Source of the DNA: Lepidodermella squamata
Taxonomy: Eukaryota > Animalia > Gastrotricha
Assembly: GCA_047495785.1 (NCBI GenBank)
Contig: JBLDXI010000017.1
Location: forward strand, 1,612,001 to 1,676,000
DNA length: 64,000 nt
Reading direction: 5' to 3'
The notes under the pieces were generated by a model. The model was given only the letters and a program-made list of their open reading frames with translations. It was not told where the DNA came from and ran no database searches. Of the stretch, positions 1 to 34,200 are shown in pieces; position 1 is the first letter of the stretch, and the number at the start of each line of letters is the position of its first letter. The position numbers were made by a program, and so were the translations under genes.

Positions 1-898
1 CAACTGCATTTTGCTTTCAATTATCGGACCGATGAAAGGTCTTGCGCGATATATGGACAGCATGCCATTTGGCGCGGCTGGTTGCTATGTATCCCTTCTT
101 GGCGGGACGGTCATAATGTCGTCCTCCTTGATGATCCTGGCGCTCATCAGTGTCGAGAGGAGACTATGCACAACGACTAGCAACCGTACAGTTCGCGGGT
201 CTCGTTTGATTTGGTACGCCATTGCCGTAGTTGGAGTCACTGTGTTCAGTTTTCTTACATGGCTCGCTGTTTTCTATGGACTAGACGTCATAGAGCCGAT
301 GAATGTTTTGACGGTAAAGGGCCGGGTTACCGCATGTGTTGTCTTCACCAATCGCTTGTCAAGACTTGGCGCCGTCGAACTCATTTTCTTCATTTTAACT
401 TTCATTATACCCCTAGGAATAACTGTGGCAAACTATGGGTAAAATACTTATGCTAATTTGACAAGAACCAATAATGTTGTATCGTTTTTTCTTTTAAGGA
501 TGCTTTGGCGTTACGTCAGAGGCGCGCACACAGCTACAAACTACCCAAGCGAATCAAATGACGACTCGTCCTCAAAAGCGTCCCTAGCAACCAGAAGAAA
601 ATCGTCTAGCAGGGCAGTCAGTTTCAAACATCAAACTAAACGCGAAACTTTTCTCAGTCTCTTGATGGCGCTGTCAGTTGTAGAATATCTACTGCTTATA
701 ATGCCTTTAGAAATTGTTGTTGCAATTGTATGGCTTGATGAGCGTCAAGGACGCGTTTTGAATTCCAATCTGTCATTTGCTGGCTATGTGATGGTTATCA
801 TTGAAGCCTCCTTAAACCCGTTCTTACCAAGTTTCATCAGGCACAGAGCTAATGTGCGCCGGAGCCGTTCCAAAACGGACTCTGGCAGTGAGGCATAG
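1..898 (+). CDS. Class A (rhodopsin-like) GPCR, array member 1 (5' end outside window); intron 439-498
   Basis: TM3 'LISVERR', TM5 'IPLGITVANY', TM7 'LNPF'. The GT-AG intron 439-498 joins ORFs 11..442 and 458..898 in frame (NYG|MLWR). Confidence 0.85.
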
Positions 899-1556
899 AT
901 GAAGATTGATATTAAAATGACGATATTCTTACGAAGCATTTGAAATCTCTAATTGATACCCAGGTATTTTTTAGATGCGCTCCAGGCTATAATGTAGCAG
1001 ATGACCTTGCCAGTGTGAAAACACGCGACTATTTCCCACACCAGGTAGGATATTGTATGCAGTGCCCACTTGCCTGAGGAAGTATTTTTCTTCGCGGCCC
1101 GTAAGTGCATGAAGCCGTGCAAATTATTGGGTGAAGATGCGTATAATAGACCATAGCGTAGCAGTAAAAGAAAACACCCAAGTGCATGCATCGTGAAATA
1201 ATAAAGAGTGATTCTCGCGTACTTATATTCGTCGCGCTGGTGGCTACTATACCGGCTATAAAGTGCGAGCGAAAAAGCTACGAATATATTGAATTTCCAC
1301 TAATACATACGGCCACTGGGCAGCGTTTTTTGTATAGTTGACCATCATCCGGTCGGCAGGCATTCAGTGCTAACAGCCGCCGCCCATAACTACACACTGT
1401 TTTTCGCTCAAATTGTGACATAATAGCGCGCAGAACACGAGCCATTTAAAATATACGCAAACATCGCATATTATATATCAGTCCTCTAAAATAATCGACA
1501 CATTCCGCGATCAAATGACATGCATTGCAATTTTGAAAAATATTGATAGATAGAAG

Positions 1557-2678
1557 ATGGATTTGTTGAAGTGTTTTACATACCTCGAACCTGAGTCTTC
1601 AATTAACAAGTCTTGGCACTGTCGAACCAATGCCGTCAGCAACACTTCATCAGACTGCGGATTTCTCATCGACCAGCAATTCAATCGCCCACCCAATTGC
1701 GGATATTACGAGGCCGGTCTCATTATTTTCGTTAGCCTCATGGCGTTTCCATGTAATATGGTTGGATACTGGAACTTTTTGAACCGCCAACTGCATCCAG
1801 ATTTACTATTCCTGCTCGGAATTCAGTGTATCTGCAATGTAATGACAGCTTTTATTGGAATATTAAAAGGCTTGGCAAGATCTATGGATTCCTATCCTCT
1901 CGGCTCTCTTGGGTGTTACTTCGCGAATATCGGCGGAGCTTCCCTCTTAACGGCATCGCTTATGGTATTCGCTCTGATAAGCTTCGAACGGCGCCGTAGT
2001 ATTTCGCAGAAAGCTCGTCCAGCGCCTTCCCGAATGGGCGTTTACGCATTGATGGCTTTACTGCTGATAGTTTATAGTTTCTTGTCTTGGTTCTGTTTGA
2101 TGTTCGTTTTTGATGTTATCAAAGTTCACTCCGTCACGAATATCTACTCTATGACTGTTTGCGCCATTTACATCAACAGCCTTTCATCCCATGTTCCTGT
2201 TGAGCTGTTATTCGTCGCCTTGAACTTGGCTATTCCACTCTTAGTGATTCTAGTTAATTACAGGTATGTATCTTCAAAATGGATTAAGCGTTAAATACTT
2301 TTTCCGTTATGCAGAGCAATATGGGCTGAGCTCCGAAAATCGAGCGATGTAGCTCGGAAAGAGCTGTGGGGCTCGAAAAGCGCCTGGCTTGTCCTGATAT
2401 CTCTTGGGAATTCATCAACATCCCCGCAAGCTTCCAAATACCAACAGAAAAGAGAACGGTTCCTCGCTATACTGATGCTGGTATCTCTGTGTCATTTCTT
2501 GGTGTTTCTGATGCCGTTGGAGCTTGCGATCGCTTTAGTTTGGCTTGACGAAAGCAACGACAAGGTTCTCAATTCAAATCTCGTGTTCGTAGGTCATCTT
2601 TTAGTAATCGTCGAAGTAATGATGAACCCATTCCTGGTCAGTTTTGTTCACAAAAGAAGCTGCAATCGAAGCAGCTAA
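1557..2678 (+). CDS. Class A GPCR, member 2; intron 2264-2314
   Basis: N-terminal family motif (INKSWHC...CGFLIDQQFNR), SFERR, NPF. Spliced frame is open to TAA 2678. Confidence 0.88.
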
Positions 2679-2926
2679 AAAATCGCATGCCAAATACAGT
2701 ATGTATATGTGATGATGAACCATTTTTACTTAAGCTTCTTATTCTTATTGATTTTGGCGAGTGCAATCAAAATACAAGCATTATTTATGTGTCGAACAAT
2801 TTCGGGAGCCTCTTGAATAAAGCTTCGTCTATTTTTGTGATATTCTTCTCTTTGAACTCCTTTTGCATGACGTTCATGCGTACGAATAAATTACAACTTC
2901 CTGCTTAATAATATTACATCAACGGG

Positions 2927-3993
2927 ATGTCTCTATCTGACTGCTTCACGCTTTACGACCCAATTTCAACTCTGAACAAATCATGGCTCTGCTTCCCAAA
3001 ACCGCAGACTTTTTTCTATTCAACAGCCAACAAGTCAACTGTTTGCGGGTTCCTCTACTTCCAGCATTTCAAGCGGCCAACCGACTCGTGTGGTCTTCTT
3101 GAGGCTGCTATAATCATTTTTCTGAGTTTGATGGTGGTTCCATTCAATATCATGGGTTATTTCAATCTGGGCTGTCGGGGGATCAGAGAGGAGATGTTGC
3201 TGTTGCTGCGGATTTTCTGCTTCTTGAACTCAGGCTATTTACCAATTGGAATTTTATTCGCGCTGTCAAGGTTGATCGACACAATGCCGATGGGTAGCAT
3301 TGGCTGTGGAATCGTCTATTATTTAGGTGCTAGCTTTGCGACAACATCGTTGATGGTCTTGACTCTAATGAGTTTCGAGCGACGCTGGGCCGTAGTATGC
3401 CCAAGACGCAACGGCGAGCCTTCTCAAATCAAGAACTACGTCGTAGCACTAATCATTGTTTCATTTTACACCTTCTCAGCTTGTTTTGGCTACTTTTACG
3501 CTCTACCGGCACTTCAAACTATTACATTGATCCAGCATGAATTCCTCGACCCGGTTGCCGCTTGCGCTGTTATTGCAGACCCGTTTCCGCCGAACTTCCC
3601 AGGATGGGCTGTCCTTGCTGTATTAACCTTTACTGTTCCAATATTTTTGACGAGCTACAATTACGTGTATGATATTTCCAAACTTAATTAACCCCAGAGA
3701 ATATATTTCGTTACAGAGCAATAGCGATCTTCTTTTGGAGAATGCGAGGTGGAAATTGGAAGCCGGAAGAATCGCTTGAGCGTAATTTGGCGCTTGTATC
3801 GCTGCTTATCTTGGTCGAATTCGTATCACTCATGCTTCCCATGGTGGCCTCCGTTGTCCTGGTGTGGTTTGATCAAGACGATAGAAAACTGCATTCATCA
3901 ATTTCCTACTTTGGATTCACCTCTGCCTTACTTGGCGCCATTTTAAACCCGTTTCTACCAAGTCTCCTCACGACTTCCGCTTCTGCCGGGTGA
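2927..3993 (+). CDS. Class A GPCR, member 3; intron 3667-3716
   Basis: LNKSWLC motif, SFERR, LNPFLPS. A 50-nt intron after NY restores the frame. ICL3 is unusually short. Confidence 0.88.
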
Positions 3994-4172
3994 AATATAG
4001 TACTGGGTCGTTATCGATTGACAATCGGTTGGTGTTAAGCCCCTTGAAGACTTTTCTAATTTACTGATAGCAAATAGCATTGACAAAATCGATATGAATA
4101 CGCCTCATCTAAGCTGAATGATAAACGCCATGGTATAGAAGTAAAAAATAGGAAACCTAATGTGTGTATATT

Positions 4173-5260
4173 ATGGAGAATTCATCTTGCTTCGCGTTAT
4201 GGGATCCAATCACTTCTGTGAACAAATCTTGGCTATGCATCCGGCAAAATCGAAACGCCTCATGGGACTGCGGTTTCTTATTCGATCAACAATTTAACCG
4301 CCCGGAAGATTGTTATTTATACACTTACGTTGAAGCTGGACTTTTCTTTTTAATCAGCGCGCTATGCCCTCCATTTAACCTTATTGGCTTCCTGAATTTC
4401 AAACGCTGCCGCGTGAAACCAGAGCTGTTGCTGTTGATCGCTGCTCAATGTCTCTTAAATACGTTGTTGGCTGTTGTAGGTGTTTTCAAGGGCCTGGCCA
4501 AGATAATGCCGGGTATGCCACTTGGCTTTTTCGGCTGCTATATATCCTATCTCGGGATGGCAGTTCTAACAACAGCTTCTTCGTTGGTAATCGCTGTAAT
4601 CAGCGTCGAAAGAAGAATTTCTATAACACACTGCGCCATCTCACAGACACCGCGAATTGGGATCTACAGTGGGGTAGTTACAGCGATCATTATATACTGT
4701 AGCCTGTTTTGGCTCTTCGCTCTCAACATTTTCGGTATTTTGATGATTGTTGACGCTGATGGAGGCACAGCTTGTGCGGCCACTTTCAATTCTTTTCCAA
4801 CATATTTTCCCGGAGAAATTTTAATTGCAGGATCAGCTTGCTTTGTACCATTAGCTATCATTATTGTGAACTACGGGTATCGTTTAAACGCTGACTTTTG
4901 CTAATGTTTACGTTAACCATGCCGTTTTGAAGCATGATCATCTGCCACTTGCAAAAAGCTCATTCGTCGATGCAGTCTTCTTTGCTACAACAGACATCTT
5001 CATCATCATCTGTGATCAGAAACCAACAAAACCGTGAGAAGACCATAGCTTTTATAATGGCTATGTCTCTTCTAGAATTTCTCATTCTGATCCTTCCGGT
5101 TGAAATAACTATTGTTTTGGCCTGGCTCGACAGGGAAACGAAACAGCTGCAATCAAATCTTGCTTTCATCGCCTTTTTCTTGGGAATGGTCGAAGCAGCT
5201 ATCAATCCGTTTCTACCAAGTCTACAGCTGCTTTATCAAACGAGAAACAGAAGAGCTTGA
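4173..5260 (+). CDS. Class A GPCR, member 4; intron 4877-4932
   Basis: VNKSWLC...DQQFNR, SVERR, INPFLPS; in-frame splice NYG|MIIC. Confidence 0.88.
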
Positions 5261-5578
5261 CTGTTGATAAAATAAAAATTGCTAATAAATAAAAACGTTT
5301 TGTAAACGGTTCCCCAGTGATTTATGACTGAGGCCTTTTTATGCCCTTTATTGATCCAACTAATCGATGGAGGCTCATCGTTTTAAGTACAATGGTAACG
5401 TCTCTAGTTTGGCTACACAATAGAAGGTTCTCAAGCTAGTGCTTTAGCAAACATGAAGTGCTAATCGCATTATTGATTGCATTATTTAGCAATAGACTTT
5501 GCATACCCCCTGGCTAGTATTGCCACGCAATAGAAATAGGAGTCCACCAAATTTGTGGTTAAACTTGACCGGATTATC

Positions 5579-6747
5579 ATGGAATTTTTGCAATGCTTGG
5601 CGTTAGCTGATTCAGAAACATCAATTAATAAGTCGTGGATTTGTTTCCACGCAGTTAATTCGTCGATTGAGGAGTGCGGCTATTTCTATGACCAGCAGTT
5701 TAACCGAAATAACCCATTTTGTGGTTTATTCGAAGCTGGCCTTATGATATTGATAAGCCTGCTCTGCATCCCGTTCAATGTGATCGGCTTTTTGAACTTT
5801 AAACGACGGAAAATCAAAGCAGAGCTGCTGTTTCTCATCGCTGCTCACTGCGTCTTCAATTCACTGCTTACCGGCGCTGGATTAATCAAAGGTCTAGCGA
5901 GAGTCATGGATAGTATGCCTCTTGGCGACTACGGCTGTCAGATCACAGGGTTTATCAGCTCAGCGCTGTTGACAGCTTCCTTAATGGTCTATGCTATGAT
6001 TAGTTTTGAAAGGCGCATATGTCTTACTAGTATGGCTCCCAGCCAACAAGCACCACCAAGGATAAGAGCATACGCAGTCGCCTTGGCCTTCATGACGTTC
6101 TACAGCTTCGCATCATGGTTTGTGGTTATGAACGTCCTGGGAGTTGTTAGAGCTGTGAAATTCTCGCCTTTTTACTTGGAAACTCCAGTCGTGGCCTGTG
6201 CTGCCTTTTTTGACGTTTCACCTCACATCTTTCCGGCTGAAACTGTCGTTTTTACAACTGCTACGTTCGCTTTACCGCTTGCCATTATTTGTTCGAATTA
6301 TGGGTTAGTCGGTGGTTTTTAAATGCTAATATGATTGATTTATATTTGATTTTCTATCCCCGCAGAGTGATGCTTTTTACTGTTCAAAGAACACACAGAA
6401 ATTCATTGCAAAGCTCTTTCTTGCCGCGAATTGCTACTGCCAGCAGTCGTAATTCATGGCTCGGAAGTTTGCTTTCGTCCGGTCGAAGCGATACTGCGAT
6501 AATCAAACAACAACGAAAGCGCGAGCGAGTGTTATCGATGACCGTGATATGGTCCCTTGCTGAATTCATATTTTTTATTTCCCCCGTAGAGATAGCAGTA
6601 GTGCTCATCTGGCTTGACAAAAACGGAAGCAAAACTCTGCACTCGACTGTGTTTTTCTATGGTTATCTGCTTGGATTGATCGAAGCAGCGATTAATCCAT
6701 TCCTGCCCAGCTTTTTCTTCAAATCAAGGTTGAATAACAGAAACTAG
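5579..6747 (+). CDS. Class A GPCR, member 5; intron 6304-6365
   Basis: INKSWIC...DQQFNR, SFERR, INPFLPS; in-frame splice NYG|VMLF. Confidence 0.88.
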
Positions 6748-7042
6748 AAATTAATTACTGCGCATTTCCTTTTTCAGTGCAATTTTTATTAGTTCATGGC
6801 ATTGTAGCATAGAAGGTAATTTATGAGGTGAATAAAACAATGAGATTCAATATAGTGGCTGAATGCTGATTTTCTCTGCTGCGCAGGATTTATTCGCAAC
6901 TTTTACGTTGTTCTCACGTGGGAATTGCTGTGTGCTATCATTTTTTTAACGCAAAGTGATCGATATCTAGCAAAAAGTCTTTCATCAGATTTGCGGAGAT
7001 ATAACAGTACATGTCATTTGTCATTTGTTCGTAGTTTTTATT

Positions 7043-8460
7043 ATGCTTTCATCTTGTTTCTCGGTGATTGATGACAATTCCGCCGTTAACCAGTCCTGGG
7101 TCTGCTTAAAAGGTATCAACTTTCGGCAGTACGGTTTGGCCACGCGTGATGAACACGCCTGCTTCTTCCTCTACGACCAGCAATTCAATCGAGGCAAGGA
7201 GTGTGACTTTGCACCATATGTCGAAGCTGTTGTCCTGATTTTAATCAGTTTAACCGCTTTCCCAACAAACGTCCTCGCCATCCGCAACTTTTATCGAAAA
7301 CATGTCTCCAATGAATTCTTCCTGCTTATCAGCACTCAATCAATTTTTAATATGTTTATTGGTTTGATAGGAGTATTCCGAGGGCTAGCCAGGTAACTCA
7401 ACGCCCTTTTAACGTCTCCTTAATCAAATTTTACTTGTTATTTCAGAGCAATGCATGACTATCCTTTGGGCTACTTCGGGTGTAATTTGTCGCTTGGCTT
7501 AGGCGCATTCATGTCTTCATCGTCTATGATGACATCAGCGCTCACAAGTTTTGAGCGGCGTCACACCGTCTGTCATTTCGGCATCGATCAAGTACCTCGG
7601 CTAAAACAAATGATTGCTAGCCTTCTTGCGGTTGTTGTCGTTAATGCATTCCTTTGGCTTGTTCCGTTCAATATATCCAACGAGGTGCGAATTCTATCTG
7701 TCCCAATAATTCACGTTGAACATGACAATCAAACCGAATATGTCGAAGTTTGTGCAATCATGTCAGACAACTACAACATTTTCATGAACACTGCCTTCAT
7801 CTCTGTAACTTTCGTCATTCCATTTGTTGCAATCGCGGTCAATTACGCGTATGTTGCGATATCTTTCATGAAATTATATCCTCTGATTTGTCTAATTTTT
7901 TTAGATTGATTTGGAAATTTCTGTGGGAAACCCACTCCACCCACGCCTCAGCAAGTAACACATTATTAATGAACCAGCGGAGGCGAGAGGTATTTCTGAC
8001 AACCGTGACTGGTCTTTCGATCGTTGAATTTCTCTTCAGCTGCCTTCCGCTTCAAATAGCAATTATCCATGTTTTGTATGACCTGCATCACGAACATCAG
8101 CACATTCAGTCCTTCGCAGTGTACCTCGGTCACTGCTTTATGATTATTGATGCCGTAGTGAATCCATTTTGGACGAGCGTCGTGAAAATGAAGGCGGAGC
8201 GCAAAGCGGACCACGGGGATGGCACCTATCACGAGCTGTTAGGTCGCACTTCGTCGTTCCGCGACTCGTGCTTAACGACCAGACCGTCCGCAATTACCAT
8301 CAACTACGAGGGGTCTTACCAACGTATGTCGCCGATTTCGACTCATTCTTCATGCGCTCCGTCACCATCTGGTTCGACTTATGACTTCAGCGCCGCACTG
8401 AATGACAGACCTTCTGGCCATCAGTTTCTCTCTGTACAAAACAGTTACGGTTATCGATAG
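7043..8460 (+). CDS. Class A GPCR, member 6; introns 7393-7446 and 7849-7904; long Ser/Thr-rich C-tail
   Basis: VNQSWVC...DQQFNR, SFERR, VNPFWTS; both introns are GT-AG, phase 2. Confidence 0.88.
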
Positions 8461-9096
8461 CCCAAATATCTTATGCGAAGGCCTCATGGGAGGCAGTGAA
8501 AGCGTGAAAGTATAAAGATGATGCAATCACACTGAAACGTGTCTTTCGGCTGAATTGCTATCCGCAGTAATAGCACCCATCTATTGGGAAAACTTACCCA
8601 TTGATTGATACATTGCACCAAGTCGTATTAAAATGCATATAAAAACGGGTTAATTGCAAAAAACTGGGGGACGTTCCACTTTGAAGTAAAACTTATTAAA
8701 TTCAGCGATTGCTGCATTAAAAATTATGATCGCGATTTATTTCAAACAATTTCAATCTGTGAGTCTGTGACTAATCGCAGAATGTACTTGACTGACTTTC
8801 TTCGAAGGCGAAAGGACGAACGAATTAGTTATTCATCATAAACTAGATTTTCCCAGTTGACAAGAAAATAGCAAATTAAAGATGGCAGATATAGACTTTT
8901 AGTCCAGGCACTGTTATTATAAGGATAAGTTGTATAGCGAAATCGGAACAAAAACACAACAGTTATGATTCATTTCATTAGCAAATGGATTACCTGCGGC
9001 TTGGATTATGCTTTTGACACTGATTATATTATGATACACGAGTAAGTCATGAAAAGAGATTGCGAAAAGTGTCCATTTTTGTGAAAGCATGAAAAT

Positions 9097-10355
9097 ATGG
9101 AAACTTGTATCGACTTTACGGACCCGATTTCCGCCATCAACAAATCGTGGGTCTGCATCCCACGTTGGCAAGTCGATGGAAATTTGGTGCCTAGAAACGA
9201 AACGATATGCATGTTCATGTATGAACAGCAGTTTCATCGACCTCACCAGTACTGCAGTTACGTGGAAACGGCAGTTTTAATTTTTGTTAGTTTTTGGATC
9301 TATCCCGCGAATTATCAAGCCTTTATCAATTTTCGCAAACGTGGCGTTAAGCGTGAATTCCTACTTCTCGTCGCGATGTTGGGATTCTACAACGCCATCT
9401 GTGGTTTCTTCTTAGTGCTCAAAGCTCTTGGCAGGTAGGATAATGTTCAATTCAATAGTTATATACAGAATTAAAACTTTCCCGAAGGATGCAAGATGAT
9501 TGGCCCTTTGGAAGGTTCGGGTGTCTGTTGTCAATTGGACTTGCTACTATTGTCAGAATGGCAACTTTGCTCGTCATGGCTCTGATGAGTTTCGAACGGA
9601 GATTTTGTGTTGTTAGCATGCATTCTGCTTCAACAGCGAAATCTCGAATGCCATTCGTTGCAACTAGCATTGTTGTTATAAATTTAATATGCTTCGTGTT
9701 TTGGGCTGTGCCAATTATTGAATACAAAGTCATCGACATGCTACCCGTGATACTCGACGAAAGGACTGTTCAGGCGTGTTTTATCTTCCAACATCGAATC
9801 GGCTCCGGTACCTTTCTGGCAATGTTTATCTGTGCTACCTTTGCCCTTCCGCTTTCCGTGATCTGCTTTAATTACACGTGAGAGAATCTCCCTTGCTTTA
9901 TTCGACTTGCCTCAGCACGTTGCCTTTTATATTCCAGATATATTTGGATTTTCGTCCGCAAGAAAAACGCTGAAAGCTCAATCCAAGCCGAAAGCGTAGC
10001 AGTACTTGCCAATTCAAGCGAGCATGTCACCGACCCAGAAGTGCACAAGAGACACAAATTGCTGAAACGTCAACGTAGAAGCGAGGTGTTCCTTTCAATT
10101 CTAATGGGCGGCTCCTTGGTGCAATTCGTTATTTGCGCGATTCCTCTCCAAATAGCGGGCCTGTATATCAACTATGACCGAATGGTGACAAAAGAACACC
10201 GGTCACAAAGTTTCTTGATTTATATCGGAACGTTAATGGTCGCTGTCGACTGTGTTCTGAATCCATTCTGGTACAGCATATTACGATATAAAGCCCATTC
10301 TCATAGCCACATCAGTGGTGCGGCTCATGAGCATGAGCTGACGCCAACAACATGA
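9097..10355 (+). CDS. Class A GPCR, member 7; introns 9435-9487 and 9878-9937
   Basis: INKSWVC...EQQFHR, WPFG-x2-GC in ECL1/TM3, SFERR, NPFWY. Confidence 0.9.
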
Positions 10356-10658
10356 AAATAATCGAGGCTTTTTAGTGTGTTCCGTTTTTTAATCACCTTT
10401 TGAGTCTATTGCCCAACTTCCGTAGTAGTATGAGCGCTTAAATAAAATATCGACGACGGACACATAAGAGGAAAGGGATTTCCGAATTTCGGAGGCGGCA
10501 CGATTGCTCGCCTAACTGAACATCAAGTGCTCTTGGCCAGGCTTATTACCGCAAGACCTATAAAAAAGTGATGCTCGCATTCTTAATACGAGAGGCCGGA
10601 TATTTATGAGGTTATCCGTTCAAATGTCCTTTTATAGGATTTAGTCTTTTTTGAGTAA

Positions 10659-11921
10659 ATGGGTAGCTGTTTCGACTTTACTGACGATGAAACTTCTGTC
10701 AACAAATCTTGGATTTGCGTTCCGGCCAGCCGCCTCCCGGGCACTGAAAATGCATCCGTAGAAATATGTCTTTTTCTGTACCATCAACAACTGCAACGGC
10801 CGAGTGTGTGGTGTGGACGAATCGAAGCAATTGTGATGTTTAGTCTTGCTACTCTGGCGCTTCCTTCAAACGTGTGGGCTGTGATTAACTTTCATAGGAG
10901 GGCTGTTAGCCGAGAATTCCTTCTGCTTATTTCGGCATTAGCTGTCTACAATTGTCTAATAGCAGCAATTGAAATGTTGGCCGCTTACGCAAGGTGATAG
11001 ATTCCTTAAATGTTTAGCCTACCATTTTAAGTTACGATGCATTTGCAGGCTCCAAGATGAGTGGATGCTTGGCCATTTAGGCTGCGTTATATGTGAAGGA
11101 ATCTCGGTTGTCATTTTCACTGCATCAATGCTGTCGATGGCTCTCATCAGTGTCGAAAGGCGCTGCTGCGTTACAACCGTTTCCGCAGTGCAGCCATCTA
11201 GATTTCCGCAATTTGTCATAGCATTGATTGCAATAATCGTTTTCTCGGCTGTTTTCTGGGCATACCCGATATTCTACCAAGAAGTTTATGATACCTTGAC
11301 GCTGCAAATCGATGGCGTCAAAAACGGAACGGTGCCAATTGAATTATGTACCGTTTTCGATTACAAGATGAACAAGGCGATGGTATTTGCCTCATTTGGT
11401 TTGGTCACTTTTTTCGGACCTCTAATTTTAACAGCCTACAACTACACGTTAGTTGATCGATGACTTCTCCAATTACGAATTAAAGCTATTTCCTTTTCAG
11501 ATACATCTGGTACTTTGTTCGAAGGGTGCACAGGACGGAAAGGCAAATTAGATCCCACGTAATGTCTTTGGCAGCTCTTGGCGGTATGGACATTGTTAAA
11601 ACGGTCATGTCGAAGCGCAATTTTCGCCATCAAAGACGTCGGGAAATTTACCTCTCGACTTTGATGGGAATATCCTTGCTACAGTTTATCATCTGCCTGA
11701 TGCCATTGCAAGTGGCGGGATCGTCACTGGTTCATGATCGCATAACCGGCCGATATCAGACGCAATCCTTCTCGTTTTACGTCAGCAACTTGATGGTAGT
11801 GTTGAACGCTGTCATCAATCCCTTTTGGTACAGCCTTGTGCGATACAAGCCTAAATCCACCAAGTTCCTAGCGACGCCTAAAGATTCATCTTTACAAACT
11901 CATGATGAGACACAATCTTAG
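10659..11921 (+). CDS. Class A GPCR, member 8; introns 10994-11048 and 11448-11500
   Basis: VNKSWIC motif, SVERR, NPFWY; spliced frame intact. Confidence 0.9.
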
Positions 11922-12385
11922 GGGCATTGATGTTTCCACAGATTTTGTGATGATATCTTTTTTGTATGAAATTTGAGTTATTAGACACAAATCGTAGGTT
12001 CTTTGATGTTTAATCTCAGGTATTGAGTACGAGATTTCCGAATTGCCTTCCTTTCTTCAAGGGCTTTGCGGGAAGGATAAACTCGCTCGATTTTAACCCT
12101 TTTCCAATCGATTATGCATCTAAATTGTTCCATCGACGGTGGGCTGGATAACAGATATCATGAAAAGGATTATCATGAGAACTCGGACGTCTAGATTTCT
12201 AGAATAAGAGACACGATTTCTGATTTGCAGACACTGTTTTCGCAAAAAACCCTGACTTCTGTTCGTCTTAAATTTGCTTTGCACCTGTCTAAAAGGGCTT
12301 ATGTCGCAGCCGGTGGTCTAGAAAGAGGATGAGTTCGGCAATTCATACTGTTAGCTGAATCGGCGAAGCAGGTCATCTCAAAATC

Positions 12386-13618
12386 ATGGAAGCATGCTAC
12401 GATATTTTCGCAGCTGACACAGCAATCAACAAATCGTGGGTATGTGTGCCGAATTGGCGCATCGACGATACCTTGAATAAAAGTGCAGAGGGCTCGGAAG
12501 AATTCTGCTTGTTCCTTTTCGAACAACAGTTCAATAGAAGCCACTGGTATTGCGGCTACATTGAGGCAGCGATAATGCTGTTTGGTTGCTGCTGCGCCAT
12601 TCCGACAAACTTGCTATCTCTGAGGAACTTTTCGAAGAGAGGGGTCAGTAAGGAATTCATGCTACTTTTGGGATTCCTAATCTCCTATAACTTTATCCTG
12701 ATTCTGCTGAAGGTTATGAAAGCTTTCGCTCGGTAATTGAAGAGCATAGGTTTAATTAATAGTTGATATAAATACTTTTACAGAGTTTTGCCTGACTGGC
12801 CTCTAGGACAATTCGGCTGCTTCATGGGACTTGGATTTGGCTGCTTCATTCTTACAGCCTCAATGCTAACTATGACATTGATCAGCTTCGAGCGACGATT
12901 TTCCGTCACATCGATGTGCCCAAACCAGAACTCACGATTTCGCAGTTTACTGTTCGTCCAAGTTTTCGGGCTGATTTTCTCAGGAATTCTATGGTCCTAT
13001 CCTTTCATCTACCACCAAATCATGCAAATTATTCCTGTTTACATTGCCGGTGTGAAAAACGGGACAGAGCCGGTCAATGCGTGCTTTGCTTTGGAAACTA
13101 GGCTAGGTGCTCCGGCCACTTTTCTCATCATGTTCTCTACAGTGACATTTTTCATTCCACTTGCTTTAACAACTTTTAATTACACGTACATGTGGCACTT
13201 CGTTCGCAATGTTAGAAGAAGAGAAAGATCTGTAAAACTGATTGGCGATGTTCTGCTCGTCACCAGGACTTCAAGTAATCAAGATGAGCCCCTATCCTCA
13301 TCGCAATCAAGCAGTTTTAGCAACAGGCGGCGTCGTGAGGTTTTCCTAACGGTCCTCATGGTTGTTTCCCAAATCGAATTCGTTGTCAGCATGATGCCAA
13401 TGCAACTTGCTGGAGCTTACATTGCCTATGAAACGCATGTCGCGAAACGCTTTATAGCCCAGTCATTCCCAATCTACATTTGTGATTTGATGATTCTCTT
13501 TGATGTGGTCGTAAATCCTTTCTGGTACAGCCTCGTCCGTTATAAACGACGCCGCGCTAGTTCGGCAGCTAGCAATACGCTGTCACTGGACCGAATCTGT
13601 GGATCCGGCAGTAAATGA
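12386..13618 (+). CDS. Class A GPCR, member 9; single intron 12733-12783
   Basis: INKSWVC...EQQFNR, SFERR, NPFWY. Reads through NYTYMW with no post-TM5 intron. Confidence 0.9.
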
Positions 13619-13737
13619 CTTTTCCTATTAATCCGTAATCAATCGCATGCGGACTTCGCCTAAGCTTCTGTCAATCGAATGTCAGTTTATAAGTCGATTT
13701 TGGAATGAATAAACTGTATCCTATAATTCATCTAAAA

Positions 13738-15396
13738 ATGGCTATTAAGAGAGTGATATTTTCTTTAATGTGGATATCGTTTGGCTGCATTCGCCTGTCC
13801 CTGTGCAGGCGGCCTTGGAATGCTCAAACCGCTGGTAGTACGGTGAAATCCCACGCATCCCTTATTCATCCGTACAACGCCCGCCGCGAACGCGAACAAT
13901 CCTATCTCAGCCATCAAGCCAAAGATATAAGTGGTCTTCCTTACACTGATCAAGAAGCTGTCGAGTCTTACCTTGGTACATAAATCAATGAGCACTTGCG
14001 TTCTATGACGACCCTTATTTCACAGATTCGATCGAAGATTATGCTATCAGGAAGAAGAATACGACGCCGCAAGACATTCCTGAGGAAAGCATGCTCAAAT
14101 CCTTCTTAATTTTTAACGACATCTACGACAAGACAAGTCGGCCTGTTCTTGACGACCTTTCTGTTGTGAGTGTCAAAGTCGGCATTTCTCTCTACCACAT
14201 TTTGGACATCGATAAAAAGCAACAGCTGATGTCCTGCGTAATCGGAGTTCGAATGTCCTGGTACGACGAGTATCTGAAATGGAACACGAGAGAGTACAGC
14301 AATATCACAAAAATCCTTCTACCGTCAAGCGTTGTTTGGTTGCCGACAGATGTAGCGATTTATAACAACGCTGAAATCCAGCTCATCCATCCTGAAACGA
14401 ATGTAATTGTTTCTAATACAGGATTTGTCCTATGGATGTTTCCAAGCCTGGTTCGATCGATCTGCCTATTAGACTTCAGTTGGTTTCCGGTATTACTGAA
14501 CTTCAGCAGAAAATCCCTGTGAAATTGTTGAAACTGTTTAGTTCGATGAGCAAACCTGTGACATCATTTTATCGCCTCTGAGCTTCGATGTGAACAAGCT
14601 AAATTTAACGACATGCCATGGTTGCAACGTCAGTTATTACGACGAGCAGGGACAGGAGTGGGCCGTTAGTTCGAATCCTTGCAACTTTTACCATCTATAT
14701 TGTTGCTTTTAGCTGTCATCCATCGAGCCATCGAGGCTCGAAGTGCTCGAGTCTTTTCATCCAAACAGAGTCGTATCCCGAATTTACTTTCGCTTTACCC
14801 TGAAACGCAAGCCTCTATTTTACCTATACACTTCAATTTTTCCCTGCCTACTCATCTACGGTGTTACCCTCCTTAGTTTCATGGTACCAGGTAAATTCGC
14901 TTAACAGTTTATACCTATTGTTCTAATTCGGCAATTTGCAGTTGAGAATCGCGGAGGAAAAATCGAGTTGCCTCTCACTTGCCTGTTATCTGTGGTTGTA
15001 CTAATGATGACACTTGCGGATACTTTGGCAGCTACAGACAAAATTCCATTGATATCAAAACTCTACGCTCTCACCATGACTCAATGCTGCCTGAGTTTAG
15101 TTTTCAGTGTTACCGTCACAACTCTGGCACAAATGGGGTCCAAGTATGCAATTCCGAAGAGCCTACTATTACTGACGTATCCGTTAAAAGTTATCCAAGG
15201 AGACAGATTAAGGCGAGAGGCCCAGAAACTGGAACAACTGGAAACAATCAATTTACAGCCAAACCTTCATCATCGATATGAACATGTTGCATCACGGCAA
15301 GATTGGGAGAGATTAGCCGGTCGGCTGAATTTGATTTTTATGATGCTTTTTTTAGTACTAACTGTCGTTGGCTATTTTCTCTGCGTACCTTATTGA
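13738..15396 (+). CDS. Cys-loop ligand-gated ion channel, divergent non-alpha nAChR-like subunit; introns 13976-14025, 14490-14541, 14665-14712, 14891-14941
   Basis: Signal peptide, 'YDKTSRPV', 'WYDEYLKWN', Cys-loop 'CLLDFSWFP|FDEQTC', pre-M1 'LKRKPLFY' and four TM segments after splicing. An alternative in-frame ATG lies at 13705. Confidence 0.9.
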
Positions 15397-15920
15397 GAAA
15401 GCTATATTTAGTTGGTGCGGTACTTGAAGCATTTTCGAAAGCGTTTTATCCATCGCTTAATAAAATCATTCAGGTAAAACTGTATATAAAGTTGCATGAA
15501 GGCGATGAAGAAAGGATCTAGTTAGTTTCATCTCGCGGATAATACACTGTGTGATTAAATGAAGCGTGAGTTAGACATAAGAAAAAAGCGGAAGTAATAT
15601 CTTAGCCGCCGCTCAGAGGATCATAAGAACAATTTCTCGATCGATACATCCTATATTCGAAATTGAGCCGAGATCCCCTTGCGCTCTATTGTTCTCACTT
15701 ATGGTGAATCATAAGACACTGGTTGTCTCAAAATAAGGAGGTGAAAGTCGCCATTTCAACTTTTTGTATTTCATTGACGCGCTGTCCACTCGATAAGTCA
15801 GAAAACAACCTGTGGCGACAAGCAACAATTTTATTGCGCACGAATATCTTGAGGCATTCTTATAATTAGCGCATTTCGATGAGGTAGACTCTTCATCACA
15901 AAACCTGTATAGTGACGGTC

Positions 15921-17179
15921 ATGATTGGTGCTTACGACGGCATACCTACGAGTGAGTACGACGCGAGCAGTTCATGTCCGGGGCTATCATTGCTGTCTTT
16001 CGATGCCTTACCCGAAAATACCTCACATCTGACCAATTGCAAAGGAGATCGTGCTCAACTTCGCGGGGATTTGTTTGAACGGCATTTCTTTTCAGACTGC
16101 AGCCTTTACATCGACGCGGTTATCATTGCTACACTCGGCCTTGGATGCCTCTGCTGCAACATTATAGCCTTCAAACAGCTGGGGATGAACAAAAACTTAA
16201 ACTTGAGGTACTGCGCTTTGGTCAAGTCCACAGCTGTCCTAAACATCTTAATAACCGCTGTGATAGTCGGCAGAAGTTTCACTAGGTATGGCTCAGTTAT
16301 ATGCTAAACGCTTTGCACAACATAAATTGAACTTTACAGGCCTATAACGTTTTATCCTTTCGGCATTGTTGGATGCATTACTTTCATCAACGTTTGTCCA
16401 GCAGTCAAGACATTCGCCTATTTAATCCATGCTATAATATCATACGAACGCCGCCGAGCCGTTCTTTTAACACAGACAGTGCATCGAAGCAAAACCGAAA
16501 CTGGAGCGAAAAGTGTCACTATCCCGATCGCGGTCTCCGTTTTCCTGACGACGACGGTGTGGTGTTACATAAGCGTGACATTCATTGACATACAATCGAT
16601 ATGCTTCGGTAGCTCAACTGCGCCTGTTGATGTTTGCGTGATCTCCACGTCGAGATTGCCCCGACGGCAGTCATTCGGCATCCTCTGGTTATTCATGCTA
16701 ACTTTCATTATGCCACTTGTATTCGCAATTCTCAACTACTCGTAAGGAAATTAAATTGTTTAACAATTTAATATTTAAGGCTTTAAAATAGGGCTGTTTG
16801 GCGTTCCTATGCAAAATTCAAACATTTGATAAAGGATTCCGTGATTGGCCTTTACCTGTTCGTGCCTCCCGTCAAGTCAACGATTCTTGACATCTGCCGC
16901 AAGAAAAAGGCGCTGCAAATGCGATTCCGGATGAAACAAGAATTGGTTCTATCAGTCATCGCCGGCTTATCGACCATTCAATTCATCTTATGTTCGATAC
17001 CGTTGCAAGTTGTGTTTTCCCTGGCTCTGTACAGCGCCGTCACCCTTCAACCAGCTTCACTCAATACTGTGAAGTTCATCTCAGACTGTGTCCTTCTAAT
17101 TGACGGCGCAACAAATCCGCTATGGGTAACCTTGTTAGCAAACCGTCTAATTAAAAAGCCACCTCACTTCATTATGTGA
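15921..17179 (+). CDS. Class A GPCR, member 10 (most diverged N-terminus); introns 16286-16339 and 16742-16791
   Basis: Spliced: FYPFGIVGC...ISYERRR, MPLVFAILNY, CSIPLQ, TNPLW. Same two intron positions as members 6-8. Confidence 0.82.
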
Positions 17180-17535
17180 CGATAAATTAGGCGAATAAAC
17201 GCTGAGAAGCGAGTAAACATAGGGACAAGGAAATGAAACGCAAAGCTCGATAAATTTACCTTTCGTTGTTGAAGCAAACATTGGCTCACTTTACACCGGT
17301 ACAGCCGCACTTTGCGGATAACAAAATATTTGATTGATACTTACATGCAGGAAGCTTTTTCGGCGTGCAGTTGTATCGGAAGTGGGAGGAGTGAAAAGCG
17401 CCTTGAGGTCTATCTCTAATTCTTGACTGGAGCCTGGATGCGCGTGAAATGCGCAGCGATAATCGTGCGAGACGCATTAATACAGCGATTTTCAGTCTTA
17501 AAATGTTGACCGTCTGAACAACGCTACGTTCAAAC

Positions 17536-18984
17536 ATGCTTAGCTGTGCTAAAGACGCTGGCTACAACACATCATGGCTGTGCATGTCGATACCATCCCG
17601 TGGCTGGCCGAATTCACAACAGTGGTTTCTCTATCTTCAGCAATTCAATCGGGATGTCGCAGCTTTTGGATATGTTGAATCATCAATCATCATTCTGCTA
17701 TGCGTCGCAAGCTACGCAACCAACGCTTTTTCAATCGTGAGATTTTACCGACGCCAAGTTACTGCCGAGTTTTTCTACCTACTGACGACGTTGTGCATCT
17801 GCAACACAGTACTCACGTCCCTTGGTCTCATGCTTGGCGTCACACGGTTCAGCGGTAGCTGGCATTTCGGCAGTATCGGTTGCGGGGCTTACTTTGGCGG
17901 AAGCTTAGCGGTCATCACGCTGACGATATGGATTCTGGCCCTGGTCAGTGTTGAACGGAGACAGGCGTTGACTAAAAATCGCAAAAACCTGGCTGATATG
18001 TACCAACTCACCCAGGGTCGAGTCACGACGATACTAGGAGTTCTGATCATCACAATCGTTGGGCTATGGGGTTATATCTATGCCTGGCTTCAATCTGCGG
18101 TTGCTATAGAAGCTAACGTACCTGGTTACGAAGAACCAATGACAGTCTGCTCGATATTCCCCCAACGATTGCCGCAGAACGTCTACCTCCACACCCCGCT
18201 AATCTTAACTGCGGCTAGTTTGATCCCGTTCGGAATCACTCTTGCAAACTACACGTAAGTTGGCAGAATTCATTTAGCAGGTTGAATTTGCCCTTTTTGC
18301 AGGAGTATTTTGATGGCGATTCGGAGAATGTCGCAAAGGATGGCCAACTATGAGCAAAAGGCCTCGGAGTATGAAGCTAAAAGGGCATCGGAATGCGGTC
18401 GAAGGGCGATGCTGACATTTGACCGCAACGTATTGCTCTTAGCATCGCGATCAATACATTCAGTGCGAAAACGCCAACGCGAATTGCTGCTCGCGAAGCT
18501 AATGGCTGGTTCGCTTCTTGTCTTTGTAATCTCGCACCTGCCGTTCTTCATCATCATGTTCTACGTGAATACGCCACGCGCCGGAAATGCCGGCTTCGAA
18601 TCGTCGTACTTCACATGGAGCGTCGCGTTGCTCTACGCCAACGCCGCTGCTAATCCTTTCCTTTTCTATTGCTTCGAACCGGACTGGTGGCACCCACGCG
18701 CCAGCATCAAAGTGTTGATTGCGTCCTGGAACCGTCCATTGCCGCGCCTCGACGAGTGTAGGGCCCCGTCCTTCGCCCTCACTGAAGCTGGGTCAGTTAC
18801 AGGCTTCGATCTTAACCAACTGGTTATGAGCGAATCGCCCGTTTTGGCGCGCAAAAACTCGTCACGATCTTGCGAACGTGTACTACGCGTTTCGACGTTT
18901 TCCGATAATGCACCAAATCCAACTGTATTTTACCAATCGCCCCGATCACAAAAGAGCGTTATCAAACGACAAAGTCTAGTTTAA
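17536..18984 (+). CDS. Class A GPCR, member 11; intron 18255-18302; long C-tail ending -QSLV
   Basis: YNTSWLC...FLYLQQFNR, WHFG-x2-GC, SVERR, FVISHLPFF, ANAAANPFLFY. Confidence 0.9.
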
Positions 18985-19065
18985 ATTTTATTCACAACAA
19001 TAATATTATAACAATTAAGGTGATAATACATGTCGTAGTCTAGTTCGTGAAAAAATATTATAAGT

Positions 19066-31220: not shown

Positions 31221-34200
31221 TCACTGCGCATCGGGATACGCCGTTTTCAGAAAGTCGTCGGGTCGCTTGTGCTGCTCGATGGCGCGCACCGTGGCGAAAT
31301 CGTGCGGCAGCTCAGACTTCCGACGAAGCAGCGTTTTTTCCTTCTGCTTGTCTTTTGTCTTGTTAATCTCTTCCGCCTCGGCCTTCAGCTTTTGAAGTTC
31401 TTCGGCGGTCACGCCAGTTTCGGGCGCAACCGAGGCTGTCGGCGCGGCCGCTGCAGGCGTGTTCGAGGCGAGGGTCGGCTCTGAAAGAGCACGGTCGAGT
31501 ACGCTGAACGCGTACGGCGAGAAGGGATCGGGTGTGTTTCGCGGGGCAAGACGCTGTTGAGCGATCAGTTGTTGGTACTAAACAAAATTCAATTTATGAA
31601 AAATCCACCATAAAAAAATAGTCATCAACATTTCTTATGAAAACGACGACGACGCATTATTTTCTTGATAAATAATTTCGAAGATAATGATTTTCTCTTT
31701 GGTTTCAAACATTTATTTGAATCGCATCGAACTAAAAATACCAAATTTAAACAATAAATTGAAATTTGTAACCTCAAAATTCTGGGTTTTTTACTGTTTG
31801 CTATTTAATGATTGAAAGGCACTCACATTAGGATTCTTCTTGGCCAAATCATCGAGTTTACGCCACCTTTCGGCACGTTGAACCAACCGTTCGCGTTCGC
31901 TGTAAATGGGAAAGCGGAAACAATTAGAAATCGTGTCGAAAAATGAACCGGAAATCTTGTGACTGCGTCAACAGGAAATGAGATGCAAATTCATCAGGTG
32001 CTTACCGTTCTCGTTGAAGCTTTTGCTGCTGCGATAATTCGTCGAACAGTTTTTGATTCATGTCCATGAATAATTTCAAGGCGTTGTAAATCAAGCCGTG
32101 AATCGTCTTGTTCCAATGATTCTTAGTGCGGTACAATGCAGGGAAAACAATTGGCAAAATCTCCTGGACGTTATCCGCCATTAAATGCACAATATATTCG
32201 TTGTTCCAGTAGTATAAGACCCGTTCAGCCACCTTAAGTAAAAATATTATTGTTATTTTTCACTCTTTTTCATATTTTTTCGTCAATCATGCCTGGAAAT
32301 GGGGGCTGGATATACATCGAGAAAGTTGAACAAACAAAGGCTTCATGACTTTTTTGAACTCTTGTGGCTCCATCACGTCGAGAATCTCCTCTAGCTCGTT
32401 CAGGAACATGACCTCCTTGGGGCTATGCACTTTCGGCCAGTATCTGAGCAAACCTTTGACGACCTGTAAGTAGGACACATTAATAAAAATTATGCCATAT
32501 TATATCGAACTAGTTCGGATCATTCAGCGCTCGCGTCAAGTGAAAGCGGGCGCCTCCTCTCAAGCACATGACTCGACGAACAATGCAGCAGATTTCAATT
32601 AAGATTGGCATTCAGGGTCAGTTTCAATGCCTGCGTCGTTATATCCATACGTGCGCGCTGGCAAATAATCAATTGCCGTGGCGTAAAAGAATCACGCCTA
32701 TGCAGTACATCGCTAGGCAGATGAAAAATAAACGCACTAATACATAGTACTGTTGCATAATAATTATTATTATTCGCATAGCGGAGCACCCGTATAATCC
32801 GTCGCTGCTGCGAGTAAAATAAAAAACGTATAAAAATGACGAAATATTTAGGTCCTAGCTCGAGGTACTTTGGTTACTCTTAGCGCGATAGAAAAAACGC
32901 CGAGTATATGCTGGAGTGGAGACTATGCCACGCCACATGAGGCACAAAAATTGTAGCATATATATTCGCACACATACTTATGTATCGACAACAATGCGCT
33001 AATTTGATGATGCATGAAGAGTTTTGCTCGTGTTTGCTTGAAAAGGCCCTGTACTATATATTCAATTTTAGCGACCCAGCTATTTGACAAAGATGCGCAT
33101 TTCAGACTCGAGTAGTGGTAATATTGATATAAGCCAAAGGGCGCCGGGGACTGCGATTTCGTTCGGTCAAAAAGGAACAGAAAAAATCGATTGCGCGCTC
33201 GCAGTCCAGACTATGTTTGTCGTAAACTTCGTAAGTGTCTATAAAACTTAAATGGAGAGAGAGACTGAGGGAAAAGCCGCCTACTGCATAATAAAATGAA
33301 TCCAACTTAAAAAATCTAACAAACCGGTTCAGTAAGGGCTGGGTCCTTTTCGAGGAACTGCACAACACAGTAAGCGAGTTGAGGGTGATAAACGGATAGC
33401 GATTTGACTTTGTGCAACGGAATGAGAACTCGCTTGAGAAATTCTTTGTGCTCCTCCTTAAGCGGAAGAGCGAAACCGTTGATGATAGAACCAAGAATTT
33501 CGAGTAACTCGGCAACACCATTGTGATGCTCGGTCTCGTAAATGAACCGGAAGAATGCGTTGTTGATTTGCTTGCGAATATACGCTCGGAGGCCGAGGAA
33601 TTTCCCGTAAATGCGATGGAGGATAGTTTTTAGATAGTCGCGTTCACGAGGATCCTCCGAGTCGAATAGCTCAAGTAGCTGCAGCACAAACCGTTGGTCG
33701 ATATAACGTTTGGCAATATTCGGCTGGAAATCTGGAGACTCGACAAATCGAAGGAAAAATTCATACACCAGTTGCAGATGAGGCCAACTGGCTTCTAAAG
33801 TAGGCTCGTCTTCCTCTGGATCGAATTCGGCACCGGTCGGATTCGACATTGGAGGCAACGCGCGGAATACATTGCCAGAAAACTATGGAAATAATCGGCT
33901 TGATTAAGCTTTAATTACAAATGGCAAGACTTACCATATTTATTGCTTCTGGATAGATGGGTTCTGTGATAACACCTTTAGATCCCTGTACATACTCGAT
34001 CAGCTCGTTGAGAGTAGATCTCTTTACTTCCTTCCATTTCAAATCAGACAGGGGATCTTGGATGAAATCAAACATCACGCAACACTGCCGTATTTTCTGA
34101 ATGAATAAGTCCTCCCGTTCTGCCGCTGGAGCATCTACGAACCAAACGATATCGTAGAAACATTGCTATTATTTGCGGCTAAAATACATACCTTTCAGAA

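Follow-up and report, generated by a model that had tools for sequence, protein, structure and literature searches.

A conserved four-cysteine module at the N terminus of an orphan class A receptor family in the gastrotrich Lepidodermella squamata

Short N termini of G protein-coupled receptors (GPCRs) in class A are usually treated as disordered and fast-evolving. A 64,000-nucleotide stretch of the Lepidodermella squamata genome (contig JBLDXI010000017.1, positions 1,612,001 to 1,676,000, forward strand; hereafter the window) holds genes for receptors whose N terminus behaves otherwise. Positions 1-19000 of the window carry, on the plus strand, 11 tandem rhodopsin-type GPCR genes (Pfam 7tm_1), here called m1 to m11. 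An initial annotation had described, in m2 to m9, a four-cysteine module with an N-x-S-W motif and a QQFNR-like box ahead of the first transmembrane helix (TM1), and all of these elements are where it placed them. We find that the N terminus is the slowest-evolving part of the whole receptor family and folds confidently in prediction, and that it probably serves as an extracellular cap. Searches and alignments of m1 to m11 were made with single exons, not spliced proteins, and the full-length fold is that of a metagenomic relative, P0004.

Layout and conservation of the N-terminal module

Receptors m2 to m9 open at Met with a module of 53 to 62 residues ahead of TM1. Its order is Met, a first cysteine (C1), N-x-S-W-x-C2, a variable linker, C3-x-F-L-Y-x-Q-Q-F-N-R, C4, and a Glu at the top of TM1. 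In these eight genes C1 lies 3-5 residues from the start and is followed about 9 residues on by N-(K/Q)-S-W-x-C2. The second block reads C3-x-F-(L/M)-(Y/F)-x-Q-(Q/H)-(F/L)-x-R, with C4 another 3-5 residues on and E-(A/T) 2-5 residues beyond that. Positions C6, N17, S19, W20, C22, Q40, R44, and E52 are invariant in a nine-sequence alignment (A2). All four cysteines are present in each of m2 to m9, C4 coming 2-3 residues earlier in m4 and m6. As Asn67 of m2 corresponds to N1.50, the Glu falls at about position 1.35, placing C4 and the Glu on the first turn of TM1.

In m2, the module spans 1557..1715 (+; 53 amino acids [aa], four Cys, profile E 1e-21), from Met to the E-A at the top of TM1. C1 (Cys6 of alignment A2) is at 1572..1574 (+), and N17-K-S19-W20-H-C22, which holds the sequon, the invariant Ser-Trp, and C2, is at 1605..1622 (+); residues 20-24 are predicted to form strand 1 of a hairpin. 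The hypervariable linker at 1623..1655 (+), the predicted hairpin tip, contains a second N-x-S/T sequon. The C3 (Cys34)-G-F-L-I-D-Q-Q-F-N-R box follows at 1656..1688 (+), with predicted strand 2 at residues 32-37, and C4 (Cys48) and invariant Glu52 occupy 1698..1712 (+), where the TM1 helix (residues 46-76 in the model) begins on the extracellular side.

The other full modules of the array, all with four cysteines on the plus strand, are those of m3 (2927..3106, 60 aa), m4 (4173..4337, 55 aa, C4 shifted), m5 (5579..5737, 53 aa), m6 (7043..7228, 62 aa, with N-Q-S-W and C4 shifted), m7 (9097..9270, 58 aa), m8 (10659..10829, 57 aa), and m9 (12386..12568, 61 aa). The full module of m1 (locus L017) starts 120-270 bases upstream of the window. 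The two remaining members had been described as partial and vestigial, and the profile agrees. The m11 module (17536..17682, +) keeps C1, N-T-S-W-x-C2, and QQFNR, but has Trp in place of C3, has lost C4, and carries an S-R-G-W insert; its cross-species relative P0015 shows the same pattern. The m10 N terminus (15921..16118, +) has three Cys, lacks N-x-S-W, and retains FERHF as a remnant of the QQFNR box. It was missed by the module profile, while the TM6-7 exon of m10 was matched by the TM6-7 profile.

The mean pairwise identity among m2 to m9 is 0.46 for residues 1-22 and 0.50 for residues 34-49, above every helix (TM1, 0.37; TM2, 0.36; TM3, 0.41; TM4, 0.18; TM5, 0.34; TM6, 0.33; TM7, 0.36) and above extracellular loop 2 (ECL2; 0.19). 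These two blocks are the best-conserved stretches of m2 to m9, and the linker between them (residues 23-33, 0.12) is the worst. The proposal that the first 50-65 residues are the best-conserved part was thus borne out for the two blocks and not for the linker or for the N terminus as a whole (0.40, against 0.41 for TM3). Synonymous divergence (dS) has reached saturation in every pair but three, making dN/dS unusable, so we used the proportion of non-synonymous differences (pN). Across 38 paralogues, pN is 0.37 in the blocks versus 0.47 in TM1-TM2, and of 703 pairs, 90% have the lower value in the blocks. For seven nearest pairs that join this genome to other organisms, the blocks are 0.61 and 0.55 identical, versus 0.34 for TM1 and 0.42 for intracellular loop 1 plus TM2. 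Since synonymous sites are saturated in nearly every pair, the similarity reflects selection at the protein level rather than recent copying or conversion. Gene conversion or recent duplication as its cause was also rejected because the copies are spread over eight contigs and other species have the module as well. The conserved blocks are under stronger protein-level constraint than the helices they precede.

The near-invariant N-x-S sequon implies that the module must reach the lumen of the endoplasmic reticulum (ER) and the cell surface. The constraint could then come from biogenesis or trafficking, with the glycan and disulfides needed only for ER folding, quality control, N-tail translocation, or surface or ciliary delivery. 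The tail fits such a role: it is short (median 45 aa) and acidic (median net charge -2), as unassisted N-tail translocation requires, and it has no signal peptide, as had been noted. Within the first 25 residues no hydrophobic run exceeds 5, and the maximum 9-residue hydropathy has a median of 1.1, compared with 2.9 in TM1. The sequon is invariant in m2 to m9 and m11, a second linker sequon is found in about half of the N termini, and the module is equally conserved among paralogues with widely differing ECL2 and TM4. However, the motif is more than a sequon. Across the family the sequon is lost in a minority, several members reading D/G/R/S-x-S-W. Conservation is higher at Ser19 and Trp20 than at Asn17, and no member has Thr in place of the Ser, so the motif is not a glycosylation site alone but structural too. 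The connection of the QQFNR box and Glu to TM1, together with the confidently predicted hairpin described below, likewise suggests a fixed structure on the mature receptor, and we consider a role confined to biogenesis unlikely.

A genome-wide family and its relatives

We searched the L. squamata genome (121.2 Mb, 151 contigs, about 43% G+C) with a module profile of 57 positions. It matched 43 places with E values from 7e-26 to 2e-4, and the next match stood at 0.69, which excludes chance. The matches are spread over eight contigs (C17, C7, C13, C2, C21, C16, C26, and C25 in our contig numbering), mostly in tandem clusters, and every one continues in frame into TM1-TM2 of the same family. A TM6-TM7 exon profile matched 46 places in the same clusters. 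With 43 module and 46 TM6-7 places in shared clusters, nearly every member has the module, making it a family hallmark and not a feature of the array. The module is the hallmark of an orphan family of about 40 genes across the genome, with relatives in bryozoans and metagenomic animals.

Individual members vary. Two near-identical members on different contigs, L026 (G000:C16:976691-979834) and L032 (G000:C7:1573524-1576667), differ by 1-2 residues in the module, and their TM6-7 exons gave identical E values in the TM6-7 profile search; by their sequences, they appear to be either a duplication of very recent date or haplotypes left uncollapsed. Decayed copies (L041 at G000:C7:1081201-1081352, L029, and L039) include among them a frameshift plus TGA splitting the module, a truncation after QQFGR, and an in-frame TAA with C1 and C4 lost. 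In a cluster at G000:C17:195-196x kb, L038:523-1692:- and L037:406-1647:- are intronless full-length members of 390 and 414 aa. L038 has four Cys, but R-E-S-W stands where the sequon would be, and a long insert separates C1 from C2. L037 lacks C1 alone and is the sole clear case of an odd cysteine count in this genome.

Relatives outside L. squamata are few. A profile of the N terminus to TM2, built from the 38 paralogues, was searched against 1.84 billion protein cluster representatives and gave only 38 proteins at E ≤1e-3, about 20 of which span the module; no flatworm protein was among them. A word-index protein search with m2 exon 1 as query gave no match. All relatives that were looked up came from ENA or Logan metagenome or run assemblies, bar one bryozoan cluster. 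Several metagenomic proteins each have one particular paralogue of this genome as their counterpart and retain its cysteine pattern: P0001 is 52% identical to L040, with C1 and C2 in both; P0015 is 37% identical to m11, again with C1 and C2 in both; and P0004 is 40% identical to L033, with four Cys in both. The ubiquitin E1 encoded on the P0003 scaffold is only 54-58% identical to the copies in this genome, so at least some of the metagenomic source organisms are distant animals.

The bryozoan cluster contains two Watersipora subatra RefSeq proteins (XP_067950502.1 and XP_067946732.1) named "neuropeptide Y receptor type 1-like," and a word search started from this cluster brought in Bugula neritina EB796_024225 and the "SSTR2" protein A0A7J7IUF9. 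These names are automatic, and our literature search found no publication on the N terminus of these receptors. Their N termini read N-R-S-Y-x-W-x-W-D-D-x-x-G-W-N-Y-T-x-x-F-S-F-F-N-D-F-x-R-x-D-x-x-M-x-Y-x-E. BLASTP of P0057 against m11 exon 1 gave an E value of 5e-13 with an alignment from residue 1, in which M-x-S-C, N-x-S-Y/W-x-C, G-W, an aromatic strand, F-x-R-x-D, and Y-x-E are aligned. The bryozoan receptors thus share with the array homology from the first residue and a short N terminus without a signal peptide; unlike the array, they mostly have no module cysteine, with Trp at the C2 position, and keep a canonical DRY. Judged by this alignment, the bryozoan N terminus is the same module without cysteines. 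Of these proteins only P0057 (W. subatra) has C1 and C2, and the 98%-identical P0059 has neither (Trp at the C2 position and a shorter start), a natural case of the two cysteines being present or absent as a pair. As the Cys-free versions imply, the module can do without its cysteines.

The initial annotation had proposed that the module was undescribed and that a profile search with the module alone would reveal any known domain; no such domain was found. Pfam searches with the exons and with the module alone returned only 7tm_1, starting beyond residue 60-75, and the best E value for the module alone was 0.19-0.27. A profile search of PDB sequences with the module had a best E value of 0.49. 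In the ESM Atlas, the module alone gave no usable match and hit no named cluster, and exon 1 matched generic GPCR clusters only. One weak Pfam match (E 0.27), to the helical hairpin of the CHCH (twin CX9C) domain, was rejected because the spacings here are CX15C and CX13C and the model has strands, not helices. The P0057 protein matched peptide receptors among PDB sequences (PrRP-R at 9e-16, somatostatin, NPY, and opioid receptors), with alignments beginning at residue 42 or later; the exceptions, beginning at residues 25-36, were CCR7, chemerin-like receptor 2, FFAR4, and CysLT2. Fold comparisons of both structure models described below found no solved GPCR whose N terminus covers the module; they covered receptor models, not the module alone, and we make no claim of a new fold. 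We found no description of the module in the gastrotrich genome paper (PMC11660948), in literature on gastrotrichs and GPCRs, or in the report on the flatworm PROF1 receptors (PMC3261222). The module is without a match in the domain libraries and solved structures searched and is undescribed in the papers found.

Its practical value lies in recognition. The signature N-x-S-W-x-C ... C-x-F-x-Y-x-Q-Q-F-N-R ... E offers a compact means of recognizing the orphan family, both in metagenomes and in spiralian genomes that have been poorly sampled; there, automatic annotation labels members "NPY receptor-like" or "SSTR2."

Predicted structure, cysteine pairing, and role

The receptor core is recognizably class A. 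Exon 2 of m9 matches Pfam PF00001 (7tm_1) with 65.9 bits and E 5e-18 (cutoff, 30.5 bits), and the remaining exons match partially, each with E 1e-7 to 1e-4. The microswitches N1.50, R3.50 (as E-R-R), P6.50, and N-P at 7.49-7.50 are kept. Altered throughout the family are position 2.50 (Asn for Asp), D-R-Y (E-R-R), and the end of TM7 (N-P-F-L/W-x-S, without the Tyr of NPxxY), as at m2 residues 94 and 144-146 and in the C-terminal exons (2316-2675 and others). Based on these motifs, the family would be a divergent member of class A rather than a nonmember. The P0004 model is a seven-helix bundle, and the core looks like a peptide receptor in the models: ECL2 forms a long beta-hairpin and is joined to TM3 by the standard disulfide. 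The nearest solved structures to the P0004 model are NPFF2, OX2R, CCKAR, and NTSR1 (Z about 27), and FFAR4 (Z 16.6), followed by AT1R and P2Y1R, is nearest to the TM1-5 model of m2.

The AlphaFold2 model of m2 exon 1 (residues 1-237, 61-row alignment) has a mean predicted local distance difference test (pLDDT) score of 93.3, and its first five ten-residue blocks score 74, 82, 84, 90, and 89. Strands at residues 20-24 and 32-37 precede a TM1 helix that begins at residue 46, and ECL2 forms a hairpin (188-194/198-204). In the full-length P0004 model, the strands lie at 23-28 and 33-41 (pLDDT 86-89), again with a long ECL2 hairpin. Structure prediction had been suggested as a way to see whether the module caps the pocket, and it yields a confident beta-hairpin ahead of TM1; the position over the pocket comes from topology and analogy. 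From the strand limits, C2 and C3 would face each other across a seven-residue loop in both models.

Several observations bear on whether the cysteines form disulfides, as had been proposed. Among 56 N termini, 35 have four Cys and 16 have two. By pattern across C1 to C4, there are 38 CCCC, 12 -CC-, 6 CC--, 7 ----, and 1 -CCC. C1 and C4 were lost together in at least three lineages; on well-supported branches there are at least three changes to -CC- and at least two to CC--, the tree being used solely for a minimum event count. An alignment of ECL3 from m1 to m11 shows no conserved Cys, and the Cys of G-C at the top of TM3 (C3.25) and the ECL2 hairpin Cys are present in all members. Because ECL3 offers no conserved Cys and those of TM3 and ECL2 form the standard pair, the N-terminal cysteines must pair among themselves. 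Disulfide bonding is thus well supported, if indirectly, by the even counts, the paired losses, the predicted hairpin, and the lack of an unpaired loop Cys that could serve as partner. In the simplest pairing, C2-C3 would bridge the hairpin and C1-C4 would hold the start of the chain to TM1. We also considered a metal-binding Cys4 site and judged it unlikely, given that the module faces the outside or the lumen and that there are stable variants with two cysteines or none.

We propose that the module is probably a folded, glycosylated, disulfide-stapled extracellular cap ahead of TM1 of a peptide-receptor-like orphan family. In this proposal, S-W-x-C2 and C3-x-F-L-Y would be the two strands of the beta-hairpin, stapled by the C2-C3 disulfide, with the hypervariable and often glycosylated loop at its tip. 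The C1-C4 disulfide would tie the first residues back to the first turn of TM1, and a rigid connection between hairpin and TM1 may be provided by the Q-Q-F-N-R box together with the invariant Glu (about 1.35). The preformed cap beside ECL2 would then shape or gate the pocket entrance and aid receptor folding, and the variable tip loop may contribute to the choice of ligand. Given the peptide-receptor-like core, shaping or gating the pocket entrance is the most likely role of such a cap.

A further, tentative reading goes beyond the cap: the module may be an autonomous mini-domain, a constant stapled hairpin presenting a hypervariable glycosylated tip over the pocket entrance, whose staples (C2-C3, C1-C4, and C1-C2) were repeatedly gained, swapped, or lost on an older spiralian cap that is Cys-free in bryozoans. 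We regard this as somewhat unlikely; if true, ligand selectivity in the expansion of about 40 genes would be tuned partly from the N terminus.

The same variable tip raises the prospect of a primary docking site for a ligand or co-receptor, in which the hairpin makes the first contact and the tip sets specificity, with two-site binding as in chemokine- or angiotensin-type receptors. The peptide-receptor-like core with its long ECL2 hairpin is compatible with docking, as is a linker of 6-23 aa that varies so freely on a constant scaffold, and there is partial superposition of residues 16-45 with the N termini of AT1R and P2Y1R. Docking overlaps largely with the cap, however, and differs in emphasis only; there is no known ligand, and a loop that is often glycosylated is more often shielding than binding. 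As the primary function, it seems improbable.

Still less probable is a tethered agonist or inverse agonist, in which, for example, the QQFNR box sits in the orthosteric pocket and sets basal activity, like ECL2 in GPR52 or the tethered peptide of PARs. A constant extracellular segment across differing pockets could in principle act on a conserved activation machinery, and the PAR1 alignment does reach the N terminus (model residues 19-237, Z 14.5), though it is tied with many receptors. But the N terminus of 45-60 aa begins with the module and has no GAIN domain, other unmasking device, or further Pfam domain; there are 4-8 residues between the box and the TM1 helix, on which C4 sits, leaving little freedom to enter the pocket; and the family-wide changes in the sodium pocket and DRY region need no tethered ligand. 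Of the biogenesis, docking, and tethered-agonist explanations, this one has the least support. The initial annotation had offered a lid, a tethered ligand, and a trafficking module side by side; nothing specific supports the tethered ligand, and the lid, which as a structured cap next to ECL2 fits best, is inferred by analogy.

Several points weigh against the cap. Its placement over the pocket derives from topology and analogy, and the favored role is drawn from sequence and predicted models. The excess of conservation within the array is modest, the N terminus as a whole being about level with TM3. Five of the 56 N termini depart from counts of four or two, with an extra Cys beside C4 (two), two Cys in a spurious upstream extension (one), or three Cys (two); leaving aside an extra Cys adjoining C4, three N termini are odd in count. 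Sign tests of the co-losses are underpowered (p at least 0.25), and the tree, built on 106 columns, is poorly resolved. The main loose end is the CC-- variants (m11, L040, P0001, and P0015), which do not fit C1-C4/C2-C3 pairing and would need a C1-C2 bond; this subgroup has Trp in place of C3 and an (E/S)-R-G-W loop insert.

The finding opens up no question of long standing, and neither a ligand nor a phenotype has been linked to it. It does provide a natural series of zero, two, and four stapling cysteines, seen both between species and among paralogues, that could serve as it stands for experiments on how extracellular caps stabilize or gate GPCRs.

The array, its neighborhood, and known systems

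Each array gene has one or two tiny GT-AG introns. Intron 1, where present, is 51-55 nucleotides (nt) long, in phase 2, and always directly after the TM2-terminal Arg. It is found in m6 to m10 and not in m1 to m5 or m11: at 7393..7446 (+; 54 nt, GT-AG, phase 2) in m6, 9435-9487 (+) in m7, 10994-11048 (+) in m8, 12733-12783 (+) in m9, and 16286-16339 (+) in m10. The post-TM5 intron is missing in m9 alone (exon 12788-13615). The Logan protein P0002 stops exactly at the Arg of the exon 1 boundary, suggesting that another species has its intron at this position too.

A Cys-loop ligand-gated channel gene with ligand-binding-domain-like exons lies inside the array, between m9 and m10 (13992-15400, +), and a Neur_chan_LBD gene is found 2.4 kb downstream of P0003 (L042:7125-8264). 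A conserved linkage of GPCR and Cys-loop channel genes was rejected because the two channel proteins are not specifically similar. Further along the window, an uninterrupted 941-aa open reading frame (ORF) at 35752-38577 (+) has, by eye only, the appearance of a two-pore or voltage-gated-like cation channel. By the same criterion, its neighborhood contains B56 (PP2A regulatory subunit; 33316-33858, -), ARPC2 (59733-60668, -), and arylsulfatase-like and fasciclin-like ORFs. An Rfam scan of the whole window gave no match.

Among known systems, the platyhelminth PROF1 receptors are a lineage-restricted, divergent expansion of rhodopsin-like orphans, predicted to respond to peptides, in which some subgroups have His or Asn at 2.50 (PMC3261222). 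Membership in PROF1 was rejected: the PROF1 motifs are D-R/K-C/M in TM3 and N/S-F/G-x-x-Y/F, without Pro, in TM7 (PMC3261222, Table 3), the array family has F-E-R-R and N-P-F instead, and the PROF1 paper mentions no N-terminal cysteine. What the two share is a large, divergent orphan class A expansion, and flatworms are often placed next to gastrotrichs.

In class A receptors of the AT1R, chemokine, P2Y, and PAR type, an N-terminal segment is fixed atop the bundle near the ECL2 hairpin, and one N-terminal Cys is bonded to ECL3. Most fold alignments with our models begin at model residue 33-54; AT1R, AT2R, P2Y, PAR1, and APJR are among the few that reach the N terminus. The m2 model overlaps AT1R (4yay) over residues 21-237 (Z 15.3, root mean square deviation 3.5, 191 aligned) and P2Y1R (7xxh) over 16-237 (Z 15.2). 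Their N termini have no sequence similarity to the module. Unlike the AT1R/CXCR4/P2Y class, this family has no conserved ECL3 Cys, and its bonds must lie within the module and to the top of TM1.

Bovine rhodopsin has a short N-glycosylated beta-hairpin cap before TM1, without a signal peptide, that packs on the ECL2 hairpin. This cap is needed for folding and for closure of the pocket, and it contains no disulfides. The two differ in that only the module described here would have disulfides, and there is no sequence resemblance; opsins were not among the best fold neighbors, except jumping-spider rhodopsin at Foldseek rank 31. The likeness lies in the arrangement, here predicted from sequence and model: a glycosylated hairpin without a signal peptide ahead of TM1, together with an ECL2 hairpin.

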